DNA from: Bugula neritina
Taxonomy: Eukaryota; Animalia; Bryozoa
DNA length: 64,000 nucleotides
Reading direction: 5' to 3'
Assembly: GCA_964035545.1 (NCBI GenBank)
Contig: OZ037769.1
Location: forward strand, 16,956,633 to 17,020,632
Below the pieces are notes generated by a model. That model ran no database searches. It was not told the DNA's origin and saw only the letters and a program-made list of their open reading frames with translations. Of the stretch, positions 7,426 through 22,860 are shown in pieces. A program made the translations under genes and the position numbers. Position 1 is the stretch's first letter. Every line of letters starts with the position of its first letter.

Positions 7426-8415
7426 CTAAGGACTCTCCTTGATGCCTGAGTTCTCCTTTAGCCTAGCCTGAGACTCTACCTCCTTGTGTTTACCCCCTTC
7501 CTGAGACTGTTTCTTACTAGAGAACTCTAGATATGTGTAGACTACGCTAGCCGCAGCGCTGATATTTAGTCCAATAAAGTTCATCATACTAAACACATAA
7601 TCTCCGCCTATGAACATTCCCAGGTAGGTTATAAAGATATTCTTCATGACGCCAACTATGGTAGTGGTGAGGGCGGAGTTATACTGGGTGCACAGTACGA
7701 CGGAGTAGTTTAGGATAAATCCCATGACGCAGGCGATGACGAACTGGCCGGTAAACAGGAAATCTTCCCAGGGGGCGTGGAGAGCGAGCGAGAAACCATC
7801 TGTATAGAATACGAGAATGCCGGTAGGGATGACCATGAATAGTGAGTTATAGAAAAGAATTCCGTATTTCCCAAGTTTGGTGCCTTGCAACTTCTTCATC
7901 GTATAAACTCCGTTTAGAGCTGTTGCAATGTCACTAATAAACACCATTACATAACCGGGTAGGTTGAACGTCATGTCATACCAGGCAGCAAATATCGCCC
8001 CAAACACCATCATGTAGACTGTGAACTGCATGCTAAGGCTACGACTCTTGCCGAGCAGGATATACTCGAGGAACATAGTCATGAGTATGGAGAATCTACG
8101 TAGCACCGTGAACATAGGCAGGTTCAATCTTTTGGTACTGCCTAGACCGCAGATAATGTTACCGAGATATATTATTGGTAAAGGAAATATCTGATTAGTT
8201 GTATCTAGAGTTAGAGAAGGGAAGTCGACCAACTTGAATAATTTTCCTACTCCTAATATAAGTATAGTAGCTACCATCTGGCCAAATGCCAGAACTTCTG
8301 AGGGGAAAACATATGTAGTGAGAACTAGTTTGTTGATAACAACGATAGCGAATGACGACGCAGCGTAGAATATCGCCGTGGAGACTCGCTGAGCGAGGCT
8401 TGTCAGATTAGTCAT
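7426..8415 (-). CDS. SLC35D: SLC35D-family nucleotide-sugar (UDP-sugar) transporter, single coding exon, 329 aa
   Basis: Multi-pass hydrophobic ORF with family motifs NKxVLT.Y.FP, LNLPMFTVLRRFSI, LCTQYNSALTTTIVG, KNIFITYLGM..GGDY, GLNIS; probable 5'UTR intron acceptor near 8487. Confidence 0.92.
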   Translation of the reverse strand: MTNLTSLAQRVSTAIFYAASSFAIVVINKLVLTTYVFPSEVLAFGQMVATILILGVGKLFKLVDFPSLTLDTTNQIFPLPIIYLGNIICGLGSTKRLNLPMFTVLRRFSILMTMFLEYILLGKSRSLSMQFTVYMMVFGAIFAAWYDMTFNLPGYVMVFISDIATALNGVYTMKKLQGTKLGKYGILFYNSLFMVIPTGILVFYTDGFSLALHAPWEDFLFTGQFVIACVMGFILNYSVVLCTQYNSALTTTIVGVMKNIFITYLGMFIGGDYVFSMMNFIGLNISAAASVVYTYLEFSSKKQSQEGGKHKEVESQARLKENSGIKESP

Positions 8416-10297: not shown

Positions 10298-13200
10298 ATG
10301 TCTGCCAAGAAGGAGTTTCAACGACTACCCAAAACTATAGTTCCCTCAAACTACAATGTTACCCTCACCCCCAACCTCCAAGACTTTACCTTTTCTGGTA
10401 ATGAGACCATATCAATTGAGGTCAGTTTTTAGATTGTAGTCATATTAGTTCTGTTTACTAATGAGAAATATTTTGAATTTCTTTTCTATACTAACCGTGA
10501 AACTGTAGATCCTATTTTACCACTTATTCTTCTCTGAAAAAGTGTAGGGGCAGCAAATATGAATCATCATTTTACTAAAAATGAAATGCTAGCGCTGTTG
10601 GTAGTTACTAGAGAACACATTACTTTATATTTAGCCACTACCCACTGTTGCCATGGTTACATGGTCTCGTACTGTTCAGTTACATGGTAGTTACCAATAG
10701 CAATAAATTAAATCTGTCAGTACACAGTGATTCTATTAATACTTTCTGTCATGTAGGGGGAGTGGGAGGAGTTATGTAAGTCACATGACTACTCCCACTC
10801 CTCCTTCAACTCAACACACTGCGTGTTTGGTTAGTCACCATGGGTTGGGGGAGGACTGGGTTATGGAGACAGAATAACATTAAACTTCTGACATAGCTGT
10901 GTATAATGTGTGTGTATATTCATACTGTCACATTAATCAGTTTGAATGGGTGTTTGTGAGTCAGTTAGACATTCGCGTTGATTAATCAAAAATACATTTG
11001 GTTGGTAGTTTTTGACTGATGAATACTTGGTATAAGGAAGCGTTTGACTCGGCTGTTTCAGCATTGTTGGCAATTGTCAACTGCAGATCTGAATTTAAAA
11101 ATCTAGTTAACAACTTTTCCAATAGCCAGCTACCCCTGCCTGCTCGGTAGATATTGAAAACACTAATTATAGTAGAAATACACTTTCATATCACCATAAC
11201 CATAAAAAACTTAAATTTAGCAATCTACTCTGTACACATACACATAGCTACATTATGAAATGTTAGTTATATGTAAATTACATTTCTCCAGTTTGCTGGC
11301 TGTACTTTCTTCATCCATGAATTAAACTGTATAATTTACATTTCAATTTGCCAACAAACTCTTATCTTGTCTGGACACAACAATACCAACTTTCTGTGAG
11401 TTGAAAGAAACTATAATTGCTTTTCATCTCTTCATGATTGACTTCACACCCACATCTTTAACAGAAAGACAATGTACATATAAAGGAAGTCTATACTCAC
11501 GGAGTGTGTATAGCTGTTACTCTATCACATTATAGTATTTATATTCCAGTGTATTATAACATGCAGGTGAAAGAGTCCACACCAGTTGTGATACTCAACT
11601 CTGCTGATATTGAGATTCAGTCAGTACAGTTCAGTGGAGGGGGCAAAGGTCAGTGGCAGCGTTACTATCCAATATACTGGGTAGACTTGAAATAAACTTC
11701 CTTTTACATGTTGAAACTCTGGTTATACTCCATATTCAACATTTATTTTATGTAGAACTTGAGGCTAAAGTTGAGCTAGATGCTGAGGCCGAGACGGCAA
11801 CCTTCACCTTCCCAGAAGCACTTCCTGTAAGAAATTATGTGATCACGTGTGCACAGAGCTGAATCTTTCTGTGTCGTTCTGATTTTTTCATAGTTTTGTT
11901 TATTGGTAATATATTTAACTACGCGGGGTAATACTAGATGGTGTGTTATGTTGCTATGCGGAGTAATACTAGATGGTGTGTTATGTTGCTATGCGGAGTA
12001 ATACTAGTTGGTGTGTTATGTTGCTATGCGGAGTAATACTAGTTGGTGTGTTATGCAGCAAGGGCAGGCAACTCTCTCAGTGCAGTTCACAGGATGTCTG
12101 AATGACAAGATGAAGGGTTTCTATCGGAGCAAGTACACTTCCCCAGATGGTGAGACCAAGCACGCCGCAGTCACCCAGTTTGAGGTACGGTAACCCCCTC
12201 CTTAAAGCATACTGTACTCTGTCTTTACCTTGCAGGCTAACAGTCGTGGTGACCTTAGTTTGGCCTTCACAGGTGTTATTAGTGACAATCTGCGAGGTTT
12301 CTATAGAGCCAAATATGTAGACCAGTCGAGTGGAGAGACAAAGTACAGTGCAGTCACAATGTTATGCGTGAGTTCTAGAGCTCAATGGTGCATGCTAGTA
12401 GACATCTCTGTACGCGATATACGGCTGCAGCAGGACGGAGTAGTTGTGTTGTGTTTCCTACATTCATTCATCATATCATAGTATCGTATCATATCACAGT
12501 ATCATATCACAGTATCATATCATAGTATCATATCATATTATCGTATCATATTGCAGTCTACTGATGCACGCAGAGCCATGCCTTGTTGGGACGAACCGGC
12601 TTGTAAAGCTTCCTTTGATGTCACTCTGATAGTACCTAAAGATAGGGTGGCCCTCTCCAACATGGTGAGTTGTAGTACTAGTAGTAGTAGTAGTAGTAGT
12701 AGCAGTAGTAGTAGTAGTACTAGCTCTCATAGTAGTAGTAGTAATAGTAGTAGTAGTAGTAGTAGTATATTACTGTATAAATATTTTAGCCTGTGATCAG
12801 TGAAAGCGAGACAAAGGAAGGGCTGCGTGCTGTCACCTTTGACCGCACCCCCATCATGTCTACCTACCTGCTGGCCTTCATAGTCGGGGAGTACGACTAC
12901 GTGGAGGACCGGGACAGTGACGGGGTGCTCATACGAGTCTACACGCCGGTCGGCAAACCGGAGCAAGGTCAATTCGCCTTGGAGGTCAGTCTAGCTCGTC
13001 TTCACAACTCCCGTGTTATCTATTCTCTTCTTATTGTGTGTGCTGACAGCTGAATCTGCTCTCTGAACACAAAGAGCAGGATGAACCTACAGTTGTACAG
13101 TAAACAGCTGCCCTGGGAGTTGTCGTCTCTCTACTGTATCATCACACAGGGAATACATTATGTAGTCTGAGATACTCTGTTGCAGGTGGCTAAGAAGACT

Positions 13201-13417
13201 CTGCCATTCTATAAAGAGTACTTTGGAATTGCCTACCCGCTGCCCAAAATGGACTTGATCGCTATTGCTGACTTCGCAGCAGGTATTTCCTGTCTTGCAG
13301 CGCCACCTGTACTGTTGTTATATATAGTAGAGGTCATTGTATTGTCTGAATAGTATTGGGATTACATGAAGAGATGCAGCGCTGTTGGCATACGAATAAT
13401 ACATACAATACAATGCT

Positions 13418-13450
<33 letters not shown>

Positions 13451-16400
13451 GTAGTATATGCACAGGTGCGATGGAGAACTGGGGTTTAGTGACGTACCGG
13501 GAGACGGCCCTACTTGTAGACCCCAAGAACTCCGCCTCCTCAGCCAAGCAGAGAGTTGCTCTCGTAGTCGGCCACGAGTTGGCTCACCAGTGGTTCGGTA
13601 ACCTCGTCACCATGGTAGGTTATGAGGTCAAGGTCGTCCTGTCATATATAAGTAGTAGCCTGAGGTCCATACTGTACACTCGGCATATCTTTGTAGGAGT
13701 GGTGGACCCACTTGTGGCTGAACGAAGGGTTTGCCTCGTTCATAGAGTACCTGTGTGTGGACTTCTGCTTCCCGGAGTTTGACATCTGGACTCAGTTCGT
13801 GAAACAAGATCTGGCAGAGGCCCTGGAGCTGGACGCTCTTAGGAACAGTCACCCCATCGAGGTGGGTTATCTCACCTTCTATAGCTGGGATCTCTCACCT
13901 TCTAGATCTGAGTTATCCCACCTTACACAGCTGGGTACTCTCACCTTCTACAGCTGGGTACTCTCACCTTACACAGCTGGGTTCTCCAAGTAAACTCTTC
14001 TCTCTATTCCCAGGTACCTGTCGGCCACCCTGCAGAAGTTGACGAGATATTTGATGCCATTTCCTACTGTAAAGGAGCCTCTGTGATAAGAATGCTTCAC
14101 AGCTGGATCGGTGATGAGGTGAGATAATAAACTGAGGTGAGATAATATACTGAGGTGGGATACTGAGGTGAGGTAATATACTGAGGTGGGATACTGAGGT
14201 GAGGTAATATACTGAGGTGAGATAATATACTGAGGTGAGATAATATACTGAGGTGAGATACTATACTGGGGTGAGATAATATACTGAGGTGAGATAATAT
14301 ACTGAGGTGAGATACTGAGGTGAGATACTATACTGAGGTGAGATAATATACTGAGGTGAGATTATATACTGAGGTGAGATACTGAGGTGAGATAATATAC
14401 TGAGGTGAGATACTATACTGAGGTGAGATACTGAGGTGAGATAATATACTGAGGTGAGATACTGAGGTGAGATAATATACTGAGGTGAGATACTATACTG
14501 AGGTGAGATACTGAGGTGAGATACTATACTGAGGTGAGATACTGAGGTGAGATAATATACTGAGGTGAGATACTATACTGAGGTGAGATAATATACTGAG
14601 GTGAGATAATATACTGAGGTGAGATACTATACTGAGGTGAGATACTATACTGAGGTGAGATAATATACTGAGGTGAGATACTGAGGTGAGATACTGAGGT
14701 GAGATGATATACTGAGGTGAGATACTATACTGAGGTGAGATACTGAGGTGAGATAATATACTGAGGTGAGATACTATACTGAGGTGAGATACTATACTGA
14801 GATGAGATACTGAGGTGAGATACTATACTGAGGTGAGATACTGAGGTGAGATAATATACTGAGGTGAGATACTATACTGAGGTGAGATACTATACTGAGA
14901 TGAGATAATATACTGAGGTGAGATACTGAGGTGAGATACTGAGGTGAGATAATATACTGAGGTGAGATACTGAGGTGAGATACTATACTGAGGTGAGATA
15001 CTATACTGAGGTGAGATACTGAGGTGAGATACTATACTGAGGTGAGATACTGAGGTGAGATAATATACTGAGGTGAGATACTATACTGAGGTGAGATAAT
15101 ATACTGAGGTGAGATAATATACTGAGGTGAGATACTATACTGAGGTGAGATACTGAGGTGAGATAATATACTGAGGTGAGTCACTGAGTCGCTGTGTGTC
15201 GCAGGCGTTCCGGAAAGGTCTCCATCAGTACCTCAACAAGTTTGCCTACAAGAACGCATTCACTGAGGACTTGTGGGAAGCCCTGGTGGAGTCGAGTGGT
15301 AAGCCAGTGGGGGAAGTTATGTCCACCTGGACTAGTCAGATGGGGTACCCCGTCCTGCAGGTGGATGAGAGGAAGGAGGGGGACAAGAGAGTGCTGACTA
15401 TTACTCAGTCCAAGTTCTGTGCTGACGGGAAACCCGCAGGTAATAAAGTAGCTCCATCTTGTAGACGTATGTCGTGGTGTGCGCACAGATGTACACACTA
15501 TATTGTATATTATATAATGTGTAATACTGTATATTGTGTACTGTATAATGTATATTACTGTATAATGTATGATATTGTAGATGGTGAATTCCATTGGATG
15601 GTTCCTATTGACATCATATCTTCTGCTGATCCCACTAAATCCATTTATTCTACTGTCTTGAAAGAGAAGACAACCACTGTAACACTAGAGGGCGTGAAAC
15701 CCTCAGACTGGGTCAAAGTATGTAATTATACTTACTCTACTAGTATTACTATACTTACTCTACTAGTATTACTATACTTACTCTACTAGTATTACTATAC
15801 TTACTCTACTAGTATTACTATACTTACTCTACTAGTATTACTATACTTACTCTACTAGTATTACTATACTTACTCTACTAGTACTACTGTACTTACTCTA
15901 CTAGTATTACTGTACTTACTCTACTAGTATTACTATACTTACTCTACTAGTATTACTATACTTACTCTACTAGTATTACTATACTTACTCTACTAGTACT
16001 ACTGTACTTACTCTACTAGTACTACTATACTTACTCTACTAGTATTACTATACTTACTCTACTAGTATTACTATACTTACTCTACTAGTATTACTGTACT
16101 TATTCTCATATTGCTAATGTCCACAGCTCAACCCCGGCACTGTTGGTGTGTATAGAGTGAGGTACACATCTGAGATGTTGGACAGTATGATACCTTCAGT
16201 GAAGGACCTCAGTCTACCTGCTAGAGACAGACTTGGGCTACAGAATGACCTGTTTGCTCTGGTGAGTTGGTCCACATTGCATTTGTTTACTGATCAGAGA
16301 TTAGTTTGGATCAGCTGAGTTAGTTTCTGCACCCGGGAGTTACCTCCTCTCTTATTGTAGGCTAGGGCAGGGCTGTGCTCCACCGTCGATGTACTGAAGG

Positions 16401-18213
16401 TGGCCGAAGCGTACAGATCTGAGACGGACTACACGGTCTGGTGTGACCTCACTGCTAACCTCTCCGCCATAGCAGTAGTCCTGCAGTACACCGACTGCTT
16501 TGACCTTTTCAGCGCTTTCAAGGTCAACTTGTTTTCCGATGTTGGCAAAAGACTCGGCTGGGAGAAACTGGCCAATGAGAGTGAGTGTCAGAATCAGGAG
16601 AAGACAATTACTATGCTTTATCTGTTTGTATAGTTTCTAGCTGCACCTCTAGACGTAGTATAGTAGACTAAGTCATAGGTGTGTAGGTTAGGACTAAGCA
16701 GTGAACTGTTCATGCAGGTAATAACATAGACTAGCCTGTGTTCTGCAGGTCCCCTTGACTCTATGCTGAGGACACTAGTGTTGGCCCAACTCGGGTCCTC
16801 TGGTCACCCTGAGACAGTCAACGAGGCTACGTCACGGTTTGATCAACATCTGGCAGCGACTAAGACACTCGACGCTGATTTGAGATCTGCGGTAAGTATC
16901 TGTGTGTCACTGTTAGTCACTGTTAGTTACTGTGAGTTGCTGTTAGTCACTGTTAGTTACTGTGAGTTGCTGTTAGTCACTGTGAGTTGCTGTTACTGTT
17001 AGTTACTGTGAGTTGCTGTTAGTCACTCTTAGTTACTGTTAGTCACTCTTAGTTACTGTAAGTTACTGTGAGTTACTGTTAGTCACTGTGAGTTACTGTT
17101 AGTCACTGTGACCATTATATTCACTTCTGCTCTTTGCAGGTCTACAGTGTAGTGATGAAGAGGGGAGATGAATCATACTGTGATAAAATGACAGACGTGA
17201 GTAACATTACCTGTTCACTCTTCTTTCTATTTACCTGTTCACTCTTCTCTCTATTTACCTAGACTACAGTGTACACATCTTGACCTGTTTTCACTCTGCA
17301 TCTATCATCATATTGTTGTGAACCGAGTGTATATAGTATAGTATATACATATACATATACTTGTGTAGTGTATACACTGTGTGTGTGTCCACAGCTATAT
17401 AGAACCAGTGAACTTAGTGAGGAGAAAGTAAGAATATTGCGGGTGCTGGGTCAGACCCCCAACTCTGAAAAGCTGAAGAGTGCTTTGGAGTTTTCCATAT
17501 CTGTAAGTTGACTATCTTATGAAGACAATATACAATGTTACATAGCAGCTCATTGGCTGTTGTATTACCTGCAACATGTATTGTGATGTTCAATTGGTTG
17601 ACCACAATTGTGCTGTTATTTCATTGGCTGATATGTTGGCAGGAGGAAGTGAGGTCACAGGATGCAGTGTTCTGTATCGCTGGGGCAACCAGCTCAGCTC
17701 AAGGTCGTCAGCTGTCGTGGGAGTTCCTGCAGAGCAACTGGACTAAACTCTCCTCCATGTACGAGGGGGGTTTCCTACTCGCCCGACTTGTCAAGATTTG
17801 CACTGAGAACTTTGCTGACCGAAACAAGATCTCAGAGATAAAGGTGTGTAGTCTGTGCTGACCAGGGCTATTGAGATATTAAATTTTAACATACCCGACT
17901 TATTAGCTAATATTTATTAAAAATAGGCTATTTTGTTTAAGGAAAAAACTGTATTTCAAACCAACTCTTAATAATTTGAACATCTGCGTTTATGAAATAC
18001 TGGAAAGACAACTCCTCCAGCTCTCCACTGTAATGTGCTGCCGCTGTTATATGGCTGCTGCTGCCACTGTTGTAGGAGTTCTTTGAGAAGAATCCAGCTC
18101 CTGCTGCAAACCGGGTCATCCAACAATCCTGTGAGAACATCGAGCTAAATGCAGCTCTTTTGGAGAGAGACGGGGACGCAGTGAAGGCGTACCTCTCCGA
18201 ACTTACCAAATAA
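10298..18213 (+). CDS. NPEPPS: Puromycin-sensitive aminopeptidase (M1 zinc metallopeptidase), ~864 aa with exon 4a
   Basis: Exons 10298-10420, 11567-11648, 11756-11826, [12059-12184 OR 12236-12367], 12557-12664, 12790-12984, 13186-13282, 13466-13614, 13697-13861, 14014-14118, 15205-15439, 15581-15717, 16127-16261, 16361-16580, 16749-16891, 17140-17196, 17395-17502, 17643-17843, 18076-18213; all GT-AG with matching phases; motifs [35 protein letters not shown]-x-NEGFA, FDAISY.KG. Confidence 0.95.
11923..12055 (+). repeat. 35-bp intronic tandem repeat abutting exon 4a acceptor
   Basis: Unit gcggagtaatactag(a/t)tggtgtgttatgttgctat, nearly 4 copies. Confidence 0.9.
12059..12184 (+). CDS. NPEPPS: PSA exon 4a (canonical, ends TQFE)
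   Basis: ttatgcag|CAA...TTTGAG|gtacgg; 126 nt, phase 0/0; [42 protein letters not shown]. Confidence 0.93.
12236..12367 (+). CDS. NPEPPS: PSA exon 4b (duplicated alternative exon, ends TMLC)
   Basis: ctttaccttgcag|GCT...TGC|gtgagt; 132 nt, phase 0/0, no stops; [44 protein letters not shown] aligns with exon 4a. Confidence 0.85.
12672..12767 (+). repeat. (TAG)n microsatellite in PSA intron
   Basis: Visible AGT/TAG run right after the donor at 12665. Confidence 0.9.
14115..15180 (+). repeat. 13/18-bp minisatellite containing the host donor TGAG|GTGAGA
   Basis: About 60 units of atactgaggtgag(ataat/atact) fill PSA intron 14119-15204. Confidence 0.97.
15728..16105 (+). repeat. 23-bp intronic minisatellite (ATACTTACTCTACTAGTATTACT)
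   Basis: About 16 copies fill PSA intron 15718-16126. Confidence 0.95.
16905..17110 (+). repeat. Degenerate 10-bp intronic repeat (CTGTTAGTCA/CTGTGAGTTA)
   Basis: Visible array in PSA intron 16892-17139. Confidence 0.9.
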
Positions 18214-18696: not shown

Positions 18697-20146
18697 CTAC
18701 CAGCTTTGCTGTAATTTCTGAAGATGTTCCACTGCATTGTTGCTAATATTGAGAGGTACGAATATAGACTTGAGGTCCGGTTCCCCCATCATTGACAGGC
18801 CAGCTAAACCCATGTAGGAGTGTAACGGGTCGGGGGTTGTAGTTGTCCACTTGCCGAACCCCCCTACCACATTGTCCTGAACTGACAGGAGCCATTTCCT
18901 ATTAGCCGAAGTGTTGACAAACTGAAAAGAGTTAAGTATGCGGAGTGTGGCGCCGATCCAGAAGGAATAGCACGTGTCGACTGGCTTGTTCGGACGTCCC
19001 TGGAACCCCGACTCCTGACGCTTGAGACACCATTGTTTAAGGAGGGACAACTCCACAGGTTTCAGACTGTCTAGTCTATTGAATAAGTAAAGAGCAGCTA
19101 CAGCGCAGAACGTGGAGCCACCGTGAGCTTCTAGGAAGGGGCCCTGCCCAAACCCGCCCTCATAACTCAGACTCGACAGGACATAGTTCACAGCTTTGTC
19201 AACGTTTATAGTAGAGAAGTCATTGAGGATGTAGCAGACACACGCCACGCAGTACAGGAACCTCATGTCATTCTCCGAGCCCTCTATGCAATACTGGAAG
19301 CTGCCGTCTGGCAGCTGTAAACTTGTCAGTCCGTAGGCGAGGGCCTGTCTGTCCACCCGACTCAAGTCATCTCCCAGTATTAGCAGAGAACAGAGGGCTG
19401 TGTAGGTCATGGCCACGTGTCCGTGGTCGTAATATATACAGTCTTTTTGAGGCTGGGTGAAGGAGGCCCCTGTCCACGTTGAACCTCTGAACCCACAGGC
19501 ACTCATGTCTGAAAGTCCATCCTAAAACATCAGAGAGATAAATATACTAAATCAACATATAATAATATATAATATAATAATATATAATATAGATATTAAA
19601 TCAACAAACTGAGTAGAAGGTCTATACACATCTCGACATGCATAGCTGAAAACAACTGGCTCATTACATATAAGAACTTACTCTCTGAGTGGGTAGAACC
19701 TGGAGAGAATAAATCCACTCCACCATTTCAGAACGAGATATCTTGATATCATCCAGTCTGTTTAATAAATCCAAACCGTTTATAGCAAAGAATGACAGCG
19801 TATTTCTGTTAACATCGAGGGAAGAGAACTGAGCAGGTATTACCTGAAACACAACAGCCATCTGGTGTACACTCTTAGGACTAAGGCACTTTGTTACACT
19901 GCTAGTTACAGGTAGACTATATATAACACTGCTAGTTACAGGTAGACTATATATAACACTGCTAGTTACAGGTAGACTATATATCACTGATAGTTACAGG
20001 TAGACTATATATATCACTGCTAGTTACAGGTAGACTATATATATCACTGCTAGTTACAGGTAGACTATATATATCATGTGTATTACCTGTAAAACCCTTT
20101 CAAAATACTTGACATGCTTTTTAACTTTCAATTCCTCTTCTTCCAT
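18697..20146 (-). CDS. PGGT1B: Geranylgeranyltransferase type-I beta subunit, ~348 aa
   Basis: Exons 20146-20087, 19843-19682, 19521-18697; motifs KHVKYF.R.LQ, WIYSLQV, GH.AMTYTAL, ENDMRF.YC, EAHGGSTFCA, GRPNKPVDTCYSFW, DPLHSY.GL. Confidence 0.95.
19895..20076. repeat. 30-bp tandem repeat in PGGT1B intron
   Basis: Unit cactgctagttacaggtagactatatata(a/t), 6 copies. Confidence 0.95.
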
Positions 20147-22860
20147 GGCATGAACTGTTGAAAAGAATAACATTAACTAGTGCTTCGACCAAATTACATT
20201 ATACCAGTTACAGATTCAGAAAAGATTAATGGGTGTTAGTGTTACCAGTAGTTAGCTATAATTATGCTGGTATAAGCTAAATCACATCACAGCAATTCCT
20301 TCAAAAAATAAGCAGCAATTTTCACAAAGATAAACCCGCAACAGAGTGTTAATAAATGAATAATGATACTAAATAAAATAATAATGGTGAAATGATTGTT
20401 TGATAATAATAATGAAAAGAATTATGATAACAATACTGTTAAAGTTAAAGCTAGACATACTTACTGATATTGATGCTACTACTCATATGCATAATGAGAG
20501 TTATACTTATAACAGTCTTAATAACTAATAGTAGTAGTAAATAAGTAATAAACAAGTAATAATAATAAGCAATATTAATATTTATAATAATCATAATTAT
20601 GCTCATACACTAATACAATGATACTCACTATGACAATAATACTCTCCTGTCTTACTGACTAACAGACACACTCACCCACACTGTAACCGTTAGACTAAAA
20701 CTTAGTATAATAATCATGAGGCATGGTATTGACTTTGAGAATCCTCATTCTGGTTCGCACAATCAATAGCACTGTCAGTATGAGTATCATAATGATAATT
20801 ATCGTGAGAACCAGAATAACTATAATATTAATAATGATAAAATTAAAATAACATTAATTGATTAACTTAACTTCAAGTTTAAATGATTAATTCTACGTTT
20901 AACCATTAATTTCAACTTCAACATTAGCATGAAGTAAAAAATAGCATAAAATTAAAATATGATTACCTGAGGCTAAGTTGAACAACTAGAACTAGAAGTA
21001 TAACAGTTGGTGTTACTATAAGTATAAGTATAACTCTATAAGTATAACTCACTTTTACTTTTAGTTTTAATAAAAAAAATTGTTATGATCATCAATATTA
21101 ATATAAATATCAATATTGACAAAATAAAATACACTAATTAATTAGTTACTAATTACTAACTAATAATAATAATGGGTAATTACTAATTAGTAATTAATTT
21201 AAGAATTAGAATTTCAATCTGAATCTCGATCTGAAAGTGAATTTGACTCAGCAGTTAGAACTTAGACTTAATTACTGTTAATAATTACTTATTAGTCTAA
21301 GCACTACTAATAAAACTAATAGTTGTAAGGCGTGAAAATTTAATATTGGCGAGCTCTCGTCGTTGACACTTGTAAATTATACTTTTTTAAAAAAAATCAG
21401 CCACAACTTCTTGATCTACGAGAGCTCCAGTATCAACGAAAGCTGGATATAGGTTTAAAAAAGGCTTAAACTAAAGCACTATAATTACGGAAACGGATAG
21501 AAATGTTTTAACTAGCAGTTGTCTTCTCTATACTAACAGAGCCGATGACCCCTCAGCTATTATACTAGTCATAGTGACAGAATCTACCAGTAATACCAAG
21601 TCTATTTTCAAGTAAATTAAGCCTTCAAACCATTATTATTGTGGTTAAGACCTTATAATTATGTTATACTAGTATAGTTGGAAATAGAGTTCATCTACCA
21701 GCTTTACAGTGTAGGTCAACTCTGGTCAATTATTTGCTGCTACTAGGCTTTAAAAACCAAACACTCATTTCCAGCTACATTTCAGGGTTAAAATCAATAC
21801 CTCATATTATGCAGCAATATTATGCAAACAGTCACTTTTGAGTATAGTTTTTAACACCAATTAGTTATACGAAATATTTTGTTTTCACTTGCATTAATCA
21901 ATCTAATGATCTATATGAGGTAATTTAGTAAAACTGTGTCCACATTTGTGTACTCTGTTTGCATTGTGATGCACATATCATTATTTTATTGCATCCTTGT
22001 GATTACTTGTCAAGTACTAGCAGGTATCTTGTAATGCTTGTACTACATGAGCTTGATATTGAGGTGTTACATGGACACTCCTGGGGCTGAGTAGTAGCAT
22101 AAAGACTATAGATATAATATCGAGTGACAGATGATGTACAACTATGTCCCTGCTGTCCTGTAACTTGATACAACGCGACAAAAATAGATGCCAATATAAA
22201 TTGTAGCTGTCACAGTTGAGAGGTAATAATAGTAAGTACTGCATGCCACACGCACTCTAATGATGTAACTTTACGCTACCCTTCAGCTATGCAAACAAAG
22301 TTAGCTAAACTTTCTTCATTCTCATTAGCTATTGGTTCATAAACTGCAGCAATAGTTACTGAGATTGTAGGAAGGGCGGTGGAAACAATTCTCAAGTTAC
22401 ACTTGCAATTAGACTGCGTACATTGTAAATTATATGGCTATTTAGTCTAAGGCAGCTTTAGGAATACTGTATATTACATTGGAACAAATAATATATTATA
22501 TAATATACTACATATATCACAATAATATATTACATATATTATAATATACTACATATATCATAATAATATATCATAATTCAGATATCTGAAAACAGCTATC
22601 TATTATGGCATGTTGCTTTAAAATCTCAATAGAAATAAAATAGATTATGACTGTATGATTATGTACACGTGTTGAAAATGGTGGATAAACATGATATAAT
22701 AAAGTTTTCTAATTTGTTAGAAAAATAAATATTGCTCCATAATGCAGAGTTGTCTTTCCTTGTATAGACATAAACTTAATATAAATATTTCCAAGTAATT
22801 TATAACTAACTTGTCAAACTAAATACTGTAAAACACTAAAAACAAGTAAGTCACCAGGAT

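Follow-up and report, generated by a model that had tools for sequence, protein, structure and literature searches.

The window, a 64,000-nucleotide stretch of Bugula neritina DNA, carries a PSA/NPEPPS orthologue on the forward strand at 10298-18213. Downstream of the proteasome, PSA serves as the main cytosolic aminopeptidase; its gene is conserved and usually single. The B. neritina gene was rebuilt from the sequence as 20 coding segments, all joined by GT-AG introns, of which each isoform uses 19. The protein comprises 864 residues with exon 4a and 866 residues with exon 4b, the frame being open either way; the joined isoforms were used for this frame check, and the database searches were run exon by exon. 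The signature of the M1 zinc aminopeptidases is complete and common to both isoforms. Exons 8 and 9 (13466-13861) encode GAMEN (268), HELAH (304-308) and the third zinc ligand, Glu327 in NEGFA, which together give the zinc motif HEXXH-x18-E, and the catalytic Tyr390 is also intact. Human PSA (PDB 8SW0, 9O5K), which displays the same GAMEN, HEXXH-x18-E and Tyr, is the best PDB match of both exon 4 copies, with E values of 9e-15 (4a) and 1e-5 (4b) and all other matches at 5e-3 or weaker. Of the M1 enzymes with a solved structure, PSA is thus the nearest to this gene, which begins directly with domain I. An assembly-wide search of the 216 Mb found a single PSA locus and no exon 4 copy besides 4a and 4b. 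Upstream of PSA and head to head with it lies an intronless open reading frame of 329 residues (7426-8415, reverse strand) resembling nucleotide-sugar transporters (Pfam TPT), and a prenyltransferase beta-subunit gene (18697-20157, reverse strand; Pfam Prenyltrans) converges on the 3' end of PSA at a distance of a few hundred bases. Minisatellites, among them those at 14115-15188 and 15727-16106, occupy several PSA introns, and the array of intron 10 contains a donor-like unit, GAGGTGAG, repeated dozens of times.

Exon 4 is present as two adjacent copies, placed on the forward strand between the common exons 3 (11756-11826) and 5 (12557-12664). Exon 3 ends in a phase 0 donor at a boundary shared with three related loci (L004-L006), and the exon order of these relatives also agrees with the position of exon 5. 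Intron 3 (11827-12058, 232 nt) contains a 35-nt minisatellite at 11919-12055 that reaches the acceptor of exon 4a. The canonical copy, exon 4a (12059-12184, 126 nt), encodes a peptide ending in AVTQFE, with Thr-Gln-Phe-Glu as its last residues. It is followed by a 51-nt GT-AG spacer intron (12185-12235) and by the alternative copy, exon 4b (12236-12367, 132 nt), whose peptide ends in AVTMLC (Thr-Met-Leu-Cys); an intron of 189 nt (12368-12556) then leads to exon 5. Both exons are free of stops, bounded by AG and GT, and in phase 0 at either end. With 10.3 bits, the 4b acceptor ranks among the better half of the sites of the gene. The 4b donor combines the full intronic consensus GTGAGT, found in all four lineages described below, with weak exonic bases; at 4.7 bits it falls within the constitutive range of 3.3-11.1. 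The two peptides are identical at 19 of 42 aligned residues, 10 of which use different codons, and the nucleotides agree at 22, 27 and 18 of the 42 first, second and third codon positions, respectively. Both exons align to the same part of the Pfam Peptidase_M1_N profile (84-123 and 84-120), human PSA is the best PDB match of both over the same residues, and an atlas search returned Peptidase_M1_N clusters only. Thus, 4a and 4b form a tandem exon pair of adjacent, homologous units of the same phase and similar length with valid splice sites. Translation and the splice-site check confirm the description given by the first-pass annotation, namely two homologous open phase 0/0 exons with good splice sites 51 nt apart, and the identities bear out its reading that the DNA had diverged while the protein pattern was kept.

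The two copies differ at residues that contribute to the active site. The PDB alignment sets the final Gln and Glu of 4a opposite Gln178 and Glu180 of human PSA, which has the same TQFE, and 4b has Met and Cys there. Domain I of human PSA lends Gln178 and Glu180 to the active site; Gln178 lies in S1, Glu180 and Glu319 form a negatively charged pocket that receives the amino terminus of the substrate, and the loop 151-159 is part of the active-site wall (bioRxiv 10.1101/2023.05.30.542994). The corresponding residues of M1 paralogues are Q181/E183 in ERAP1, D198/E200 in ERAP2, Q211/Q213 in APN, Q134/Q136 in LTA4H and Q119/E121 in PepN (PMC6222927 Table 5). The human PSA structure paper and this S1-subsite table establish the earlier statement that the Q-x-E lines S1 and anchors the substrate amine. 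The Q-x-E/Q residues that complete the amino-terminus pocket are present in 4a and replaced by M-x-C in 4b, and Met-x-Cys occurs at this motif in none of the 160 other proteins compared. The wall loop (human 151-159) is also encoded by exon 4, and the consistent changes of 4b in this region are N153 to S/T and K155 to N/T.

A profile-free search using just 4b led to three unrelated contigs, on which the matching frames end in S/T-M-L/F-C followed by GT. These represent three further lineages whose PSA genes display the same exon order, with 4b directly behind the canonical TQFE exon, and the pair is intact in L004 (also L012, L013), L005 and L006 (also L007, L014-L017). The four lineages carrying the pair are probably bryozoans. 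The 4b peptides of the relatives are 39-55% identical to that of the window, and Met and Cys never vary across the four lineages. Comparisons between 4b copies give pS values of 0.46-0.85 (dS from 0.7 to saturated) and dN values of 0.22-0.67. In the closest pair, 4b has a dN/dS of about 0.31 and 4a one of 0.13, and the rate of evolution of 4b is about 2.5 times that of 4a; both copies are under purifying selection in the related genomes. The first-pass annotation had proposed an old duplication under selection, to be probed through dN/dS and through the conservation of 4b in related PSA loci, and the orthologous pairs of three further lineages, always with Met-x-Cys and with limited dN beside near-saturated synonymous sites, uphold that proposal. 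Fixed differences between the 4a and 4b sets are confined to three columns, namely His/Tyr, Gln/Met and Glu/Cys. A tree calculated without the last three columns, which hold the motif, unites the 4b rows (support 86/97) and, separately, the four 4a rows (93/95), on 39 columns and with long branches. These separate groups indicate that one duplication preceded the split of the lineages, and the PSA exon would have been duplicated in tandem in their common ancestor. Five other animal PSA-like loci (L011, L018, L020, L073, L074) have one exon 4 copy. L018, considered as an exon pair from TQFQ matches, was rejected as a divergent single-exon paralogue.

The last nine bases of 4b are well conserved as DNA too, and a splicing element located there could contribute to the Met-x-Cys invariance. 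The Cys codon occurs both as TGC and as TGT, which argues against such an element as the sole cause, and the M-M-A of the APN-like exons described below, which sits away from the exon end, also weighs against this account. The weak exonic bases of the 4b donor might suggest a dead or rarely used pseudo-exon. This is very unlikely, because the open frame, the splice sites and the Met-x-Cys ending have been kept in four lineages over saturated synonymous divergence and at the peptide identities given above. In addition, the look of neutral decay in this genome is illustrated by an APN-like M1 paralogue (L072, C9:2016513), the third of its kind, in which the second copy has apparently decayed.

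The spacer is the shortest intron of the gene in every lineage, with 51 nt in the window and 38, 71 and 40-42 nt in the other three. The remaining PSA introns measure 82-1146 nt in the window, at least 99 nt in L004, at least 235 nt in L005 and at least 242 nt in L006, and the shortest of about 40 myosin introns of this genome, as estimated from profile matches, has about 89 nt. The only TRAY-type branch motif in the spacer of the window lies 8-9 nt from the 4a donor. A conserved hairpin was absent at the spacer (z about 0), and a crude, uncontrolled test for docking-selector pairing revealed no obvious conserved one. A spacer of 38-71 nt that is the shortest intron of each gene points to steric mutual exclusion, since it would be too short for joint use of the 4a donor and the branch point and acceptor of 4b. 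From these lengths we infer a mutually exclusive use of 4a and 4b, with steric exclusion by the short spacer as the likeliest mechanism. The earlier idea that the short intron sterically forces the choice stands with regard to length (38-71 nt versus at least 82 nt elsewhere in the sample), although this support is indirect. Both exon lengths are multiples of three, and co-inclusion would therefore keep the frame and give a protein of 908 residues; 4b might also belong to a retained-intron product. Either outcome is highly improbable. Co-inclusion needs the removal of a 38-71-nt intron, when all other sampled introns have at least 82 nt, and would duplicate strands of domain I, while retention of the spacer introduces a stop in the window (in-frame TAA at 12191-12193) and frameshifts in L004-L006. 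A single-exon word search gave no match. In protein collections, a profile search with 4b returned the two known fragments only, and among the 120 best fragments of a mixed profile search there were canonical ones but none in which 4b was spliced to exon 5.

Exon duplications hitting the same motif are found in other M1 genes. Two APN-like paralogues of the same genome (L023/L069, G000:C9:2035263-2035620, and L024/L071, G000:C9:2057155-2057520) carry a tandem exon pair with TTQYQPTDAR in one copy and VSMMA(S/P)TDAR in the other, thus changing Q-Y-Q to M-M-A across a spacer of 51 nt. The likeness to the PSA pair extends to the motif that is toggled, to Met at the Gln position, to a small neutral residue at the Glu/Gln position and to the length of the spacer. 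The motif lies at the start of a 156-nt exon in the APN-like pair and at the end of a 126-nt exon in PSA. Since both the gene subfamily and the exon boundaries are different, the APN-like pair represents an independent duplication. Another animal (L008-L010, L019; L008:6058-6651) carries a tandem duplicate of PSA exon 4 of its own, which displays TQFA instead of TQFE. The TQFE and TQFA copies are separated by a dS of 1.25 and a dN of 0.12, with only synonymous differences between samples, and these exons fall outside both bryozoan-type tree groups. Exclusion cannot be steric in this case, because the spacer measures 219-345 nt. Contiguous TQFA, with Ala at the Glu180 position, is also present in PSA-like genes of other animals (P0080, P0085 (L020), P0095 (L021) and P0117), and the one such gene examined keeps AMEN, HELAH and NEGFA. 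On these alignments, exon duplication appears to have removed the amine-anchoring residue on three occasions, in two of which Met took the Gln position.

Isoform A would be an ordinary PSA. In isoform B, the zinc catalytic domain and GAMEN are retained in full, with Gln178 exchanged for Met, Glu180 for Cys and the neighbouring wall loop remodelled. Its anchor for the amino terminus of the substrate would thus be weaker and uncharged and its S1 pocket more hydrophobic. The substrate range would accordingly differ from that of isoform A, possibly including N-blocked (pyroglutamyl or acyl) peptides. We consider it probable, if by no means certain, that isoform B is an active peptidase with an altered, more hydrophobic or N-blocked substrate preference. 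The main alternative, a truly mutually exclusive but catalytically weak or dead isoform serving as scaffold, peptide binder or off-switch, is possible but rather unlikely. The lost Glu180 carboxylate should lower amine binding, the faster evolution of 4b also speaks for it, and PSA is reported to have a non-catalytic role as auxiliary subunit of volume-regulated anion channels (PMC12407707). Simple loss, however, requires neither an invariant Met and Cys nor the same Met-plus-small-residue change in an independent duplication, and APN and LTA4H are functional with Gln in place of Glu at this position (PMC6222927). The invariance of Met and Cys and the convergence of the change argue for altered specificity, and three duplications changing the same motif favour a specific second activity over mere loss. 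The new Cys, invariant in all 4b copies and placed in the active-site pocket, might alternatively act near the zinc site as a redox or metal switch. Such regulation is improbable, as both independent duplications have Ala at the Cys position, which suggests that a small and uncharged residue matters and not the thiol. Altered specificity, lost activity and redox sensitivity had been listed side by side in the first-pass annotation; the comparison across loci favours the first over the second, and the third is without support beyond the presence of the Cys. With the 4b swap kept in four lineages and mirrored by two other duplications, one gene probably makes both an ordinary enzyme and an enzyme of different taste.

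TRH-DE, a pyroglutamyl peptidase, has Ser at the Glu position of the Q-x-E, a change that goes with another substrate preference, and the idea that isoform B may accept N-blocked substrates rests on this Ser. Two substitutions form the specificity signature of TRH-DE (PMC7225337). Similarly, changes at the same two positions go with other substrate preferences in ERAP1, ERAP2, APN and LTA4H (PMC6222927). In these paralogues the variation arose through gene duplication, whereas in B. neritina PSA it is carried by alternative exons of one gene. TRH-DE (pyroglutamyl peptidase II) also differs in being APN-like with a type II membrane anchor, whereas the B. neritina gene is a PSA orthologue and starts with domain I, and the comparison is limited to the way the enzymes would work. 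Three independent duplications on the same motif suggest that a second activity can evolve repeatedly in this way. A bolder proposal, which we hold to be doubtful, is that the Q-x-E of M1 enzymes is a recurrent splice-controlled switch, arising from at least three independent duplications, whose alternative isoforms would be new cytosolic and extracellular metallo-omega-peptidases acting on N-blocked (pyroglutamyl or acetylated) peptides.

Duplicated mutually exclusive exons are a known device for retuning an enzyme or a binding site, exemplified by ketohexokinase 3A/3C, pyruvate kinase M1/M2 and FGFR IIIb/IIIc, and steric exclusion through the distance from donor to branch point operates between exons 2 and 3 of alpha-tropomyosin. 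The PSA pair would share with these cases adjacent homologous exons of equal phase, the use of one per mRNA and changed ligand-contact residues, the last deduced here from sequence. It differs in protein family and lineage, and its exclusion appears to rest on the shortness of the whole intron. A pair of this kind in PSA or another M1 enzyme appears to be without a published description: the papers searched yielded nothing on mutually exclusive exons in PSA or any M1 enzyme, nothing relevant on bryozoan exon duplication, and no duplicated exon 4 in human PSA. The pair provides a natural, long-conserved two-residue rewrite of the PSA amino-terminus pocket, and thus a ready test of the contribution of Gln178 and Glu180 and of the turning of an aminopeptidase toward other or N-blocked substrates. 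Splicing within one gene would here take the role that falls to gene duplication in other parts of the M1 family.

Two minor observations concern other parts of the B. neritina assembly. In a myosin head gene on contig C1, profile positions 90-121 and 174-216 are each matched twice (G000:C1:10717499-10717967 and 10719201-10719548), giving two more candidate tandem exon pairs. The myosin and M1 genes on contigs C101, C126, C127 and C194 are poor in introns and contain many in-frame TAA and TAG codons; these are probably ciliate contigs, reading TAA/TAG as Gln, that contaminate the assembly.
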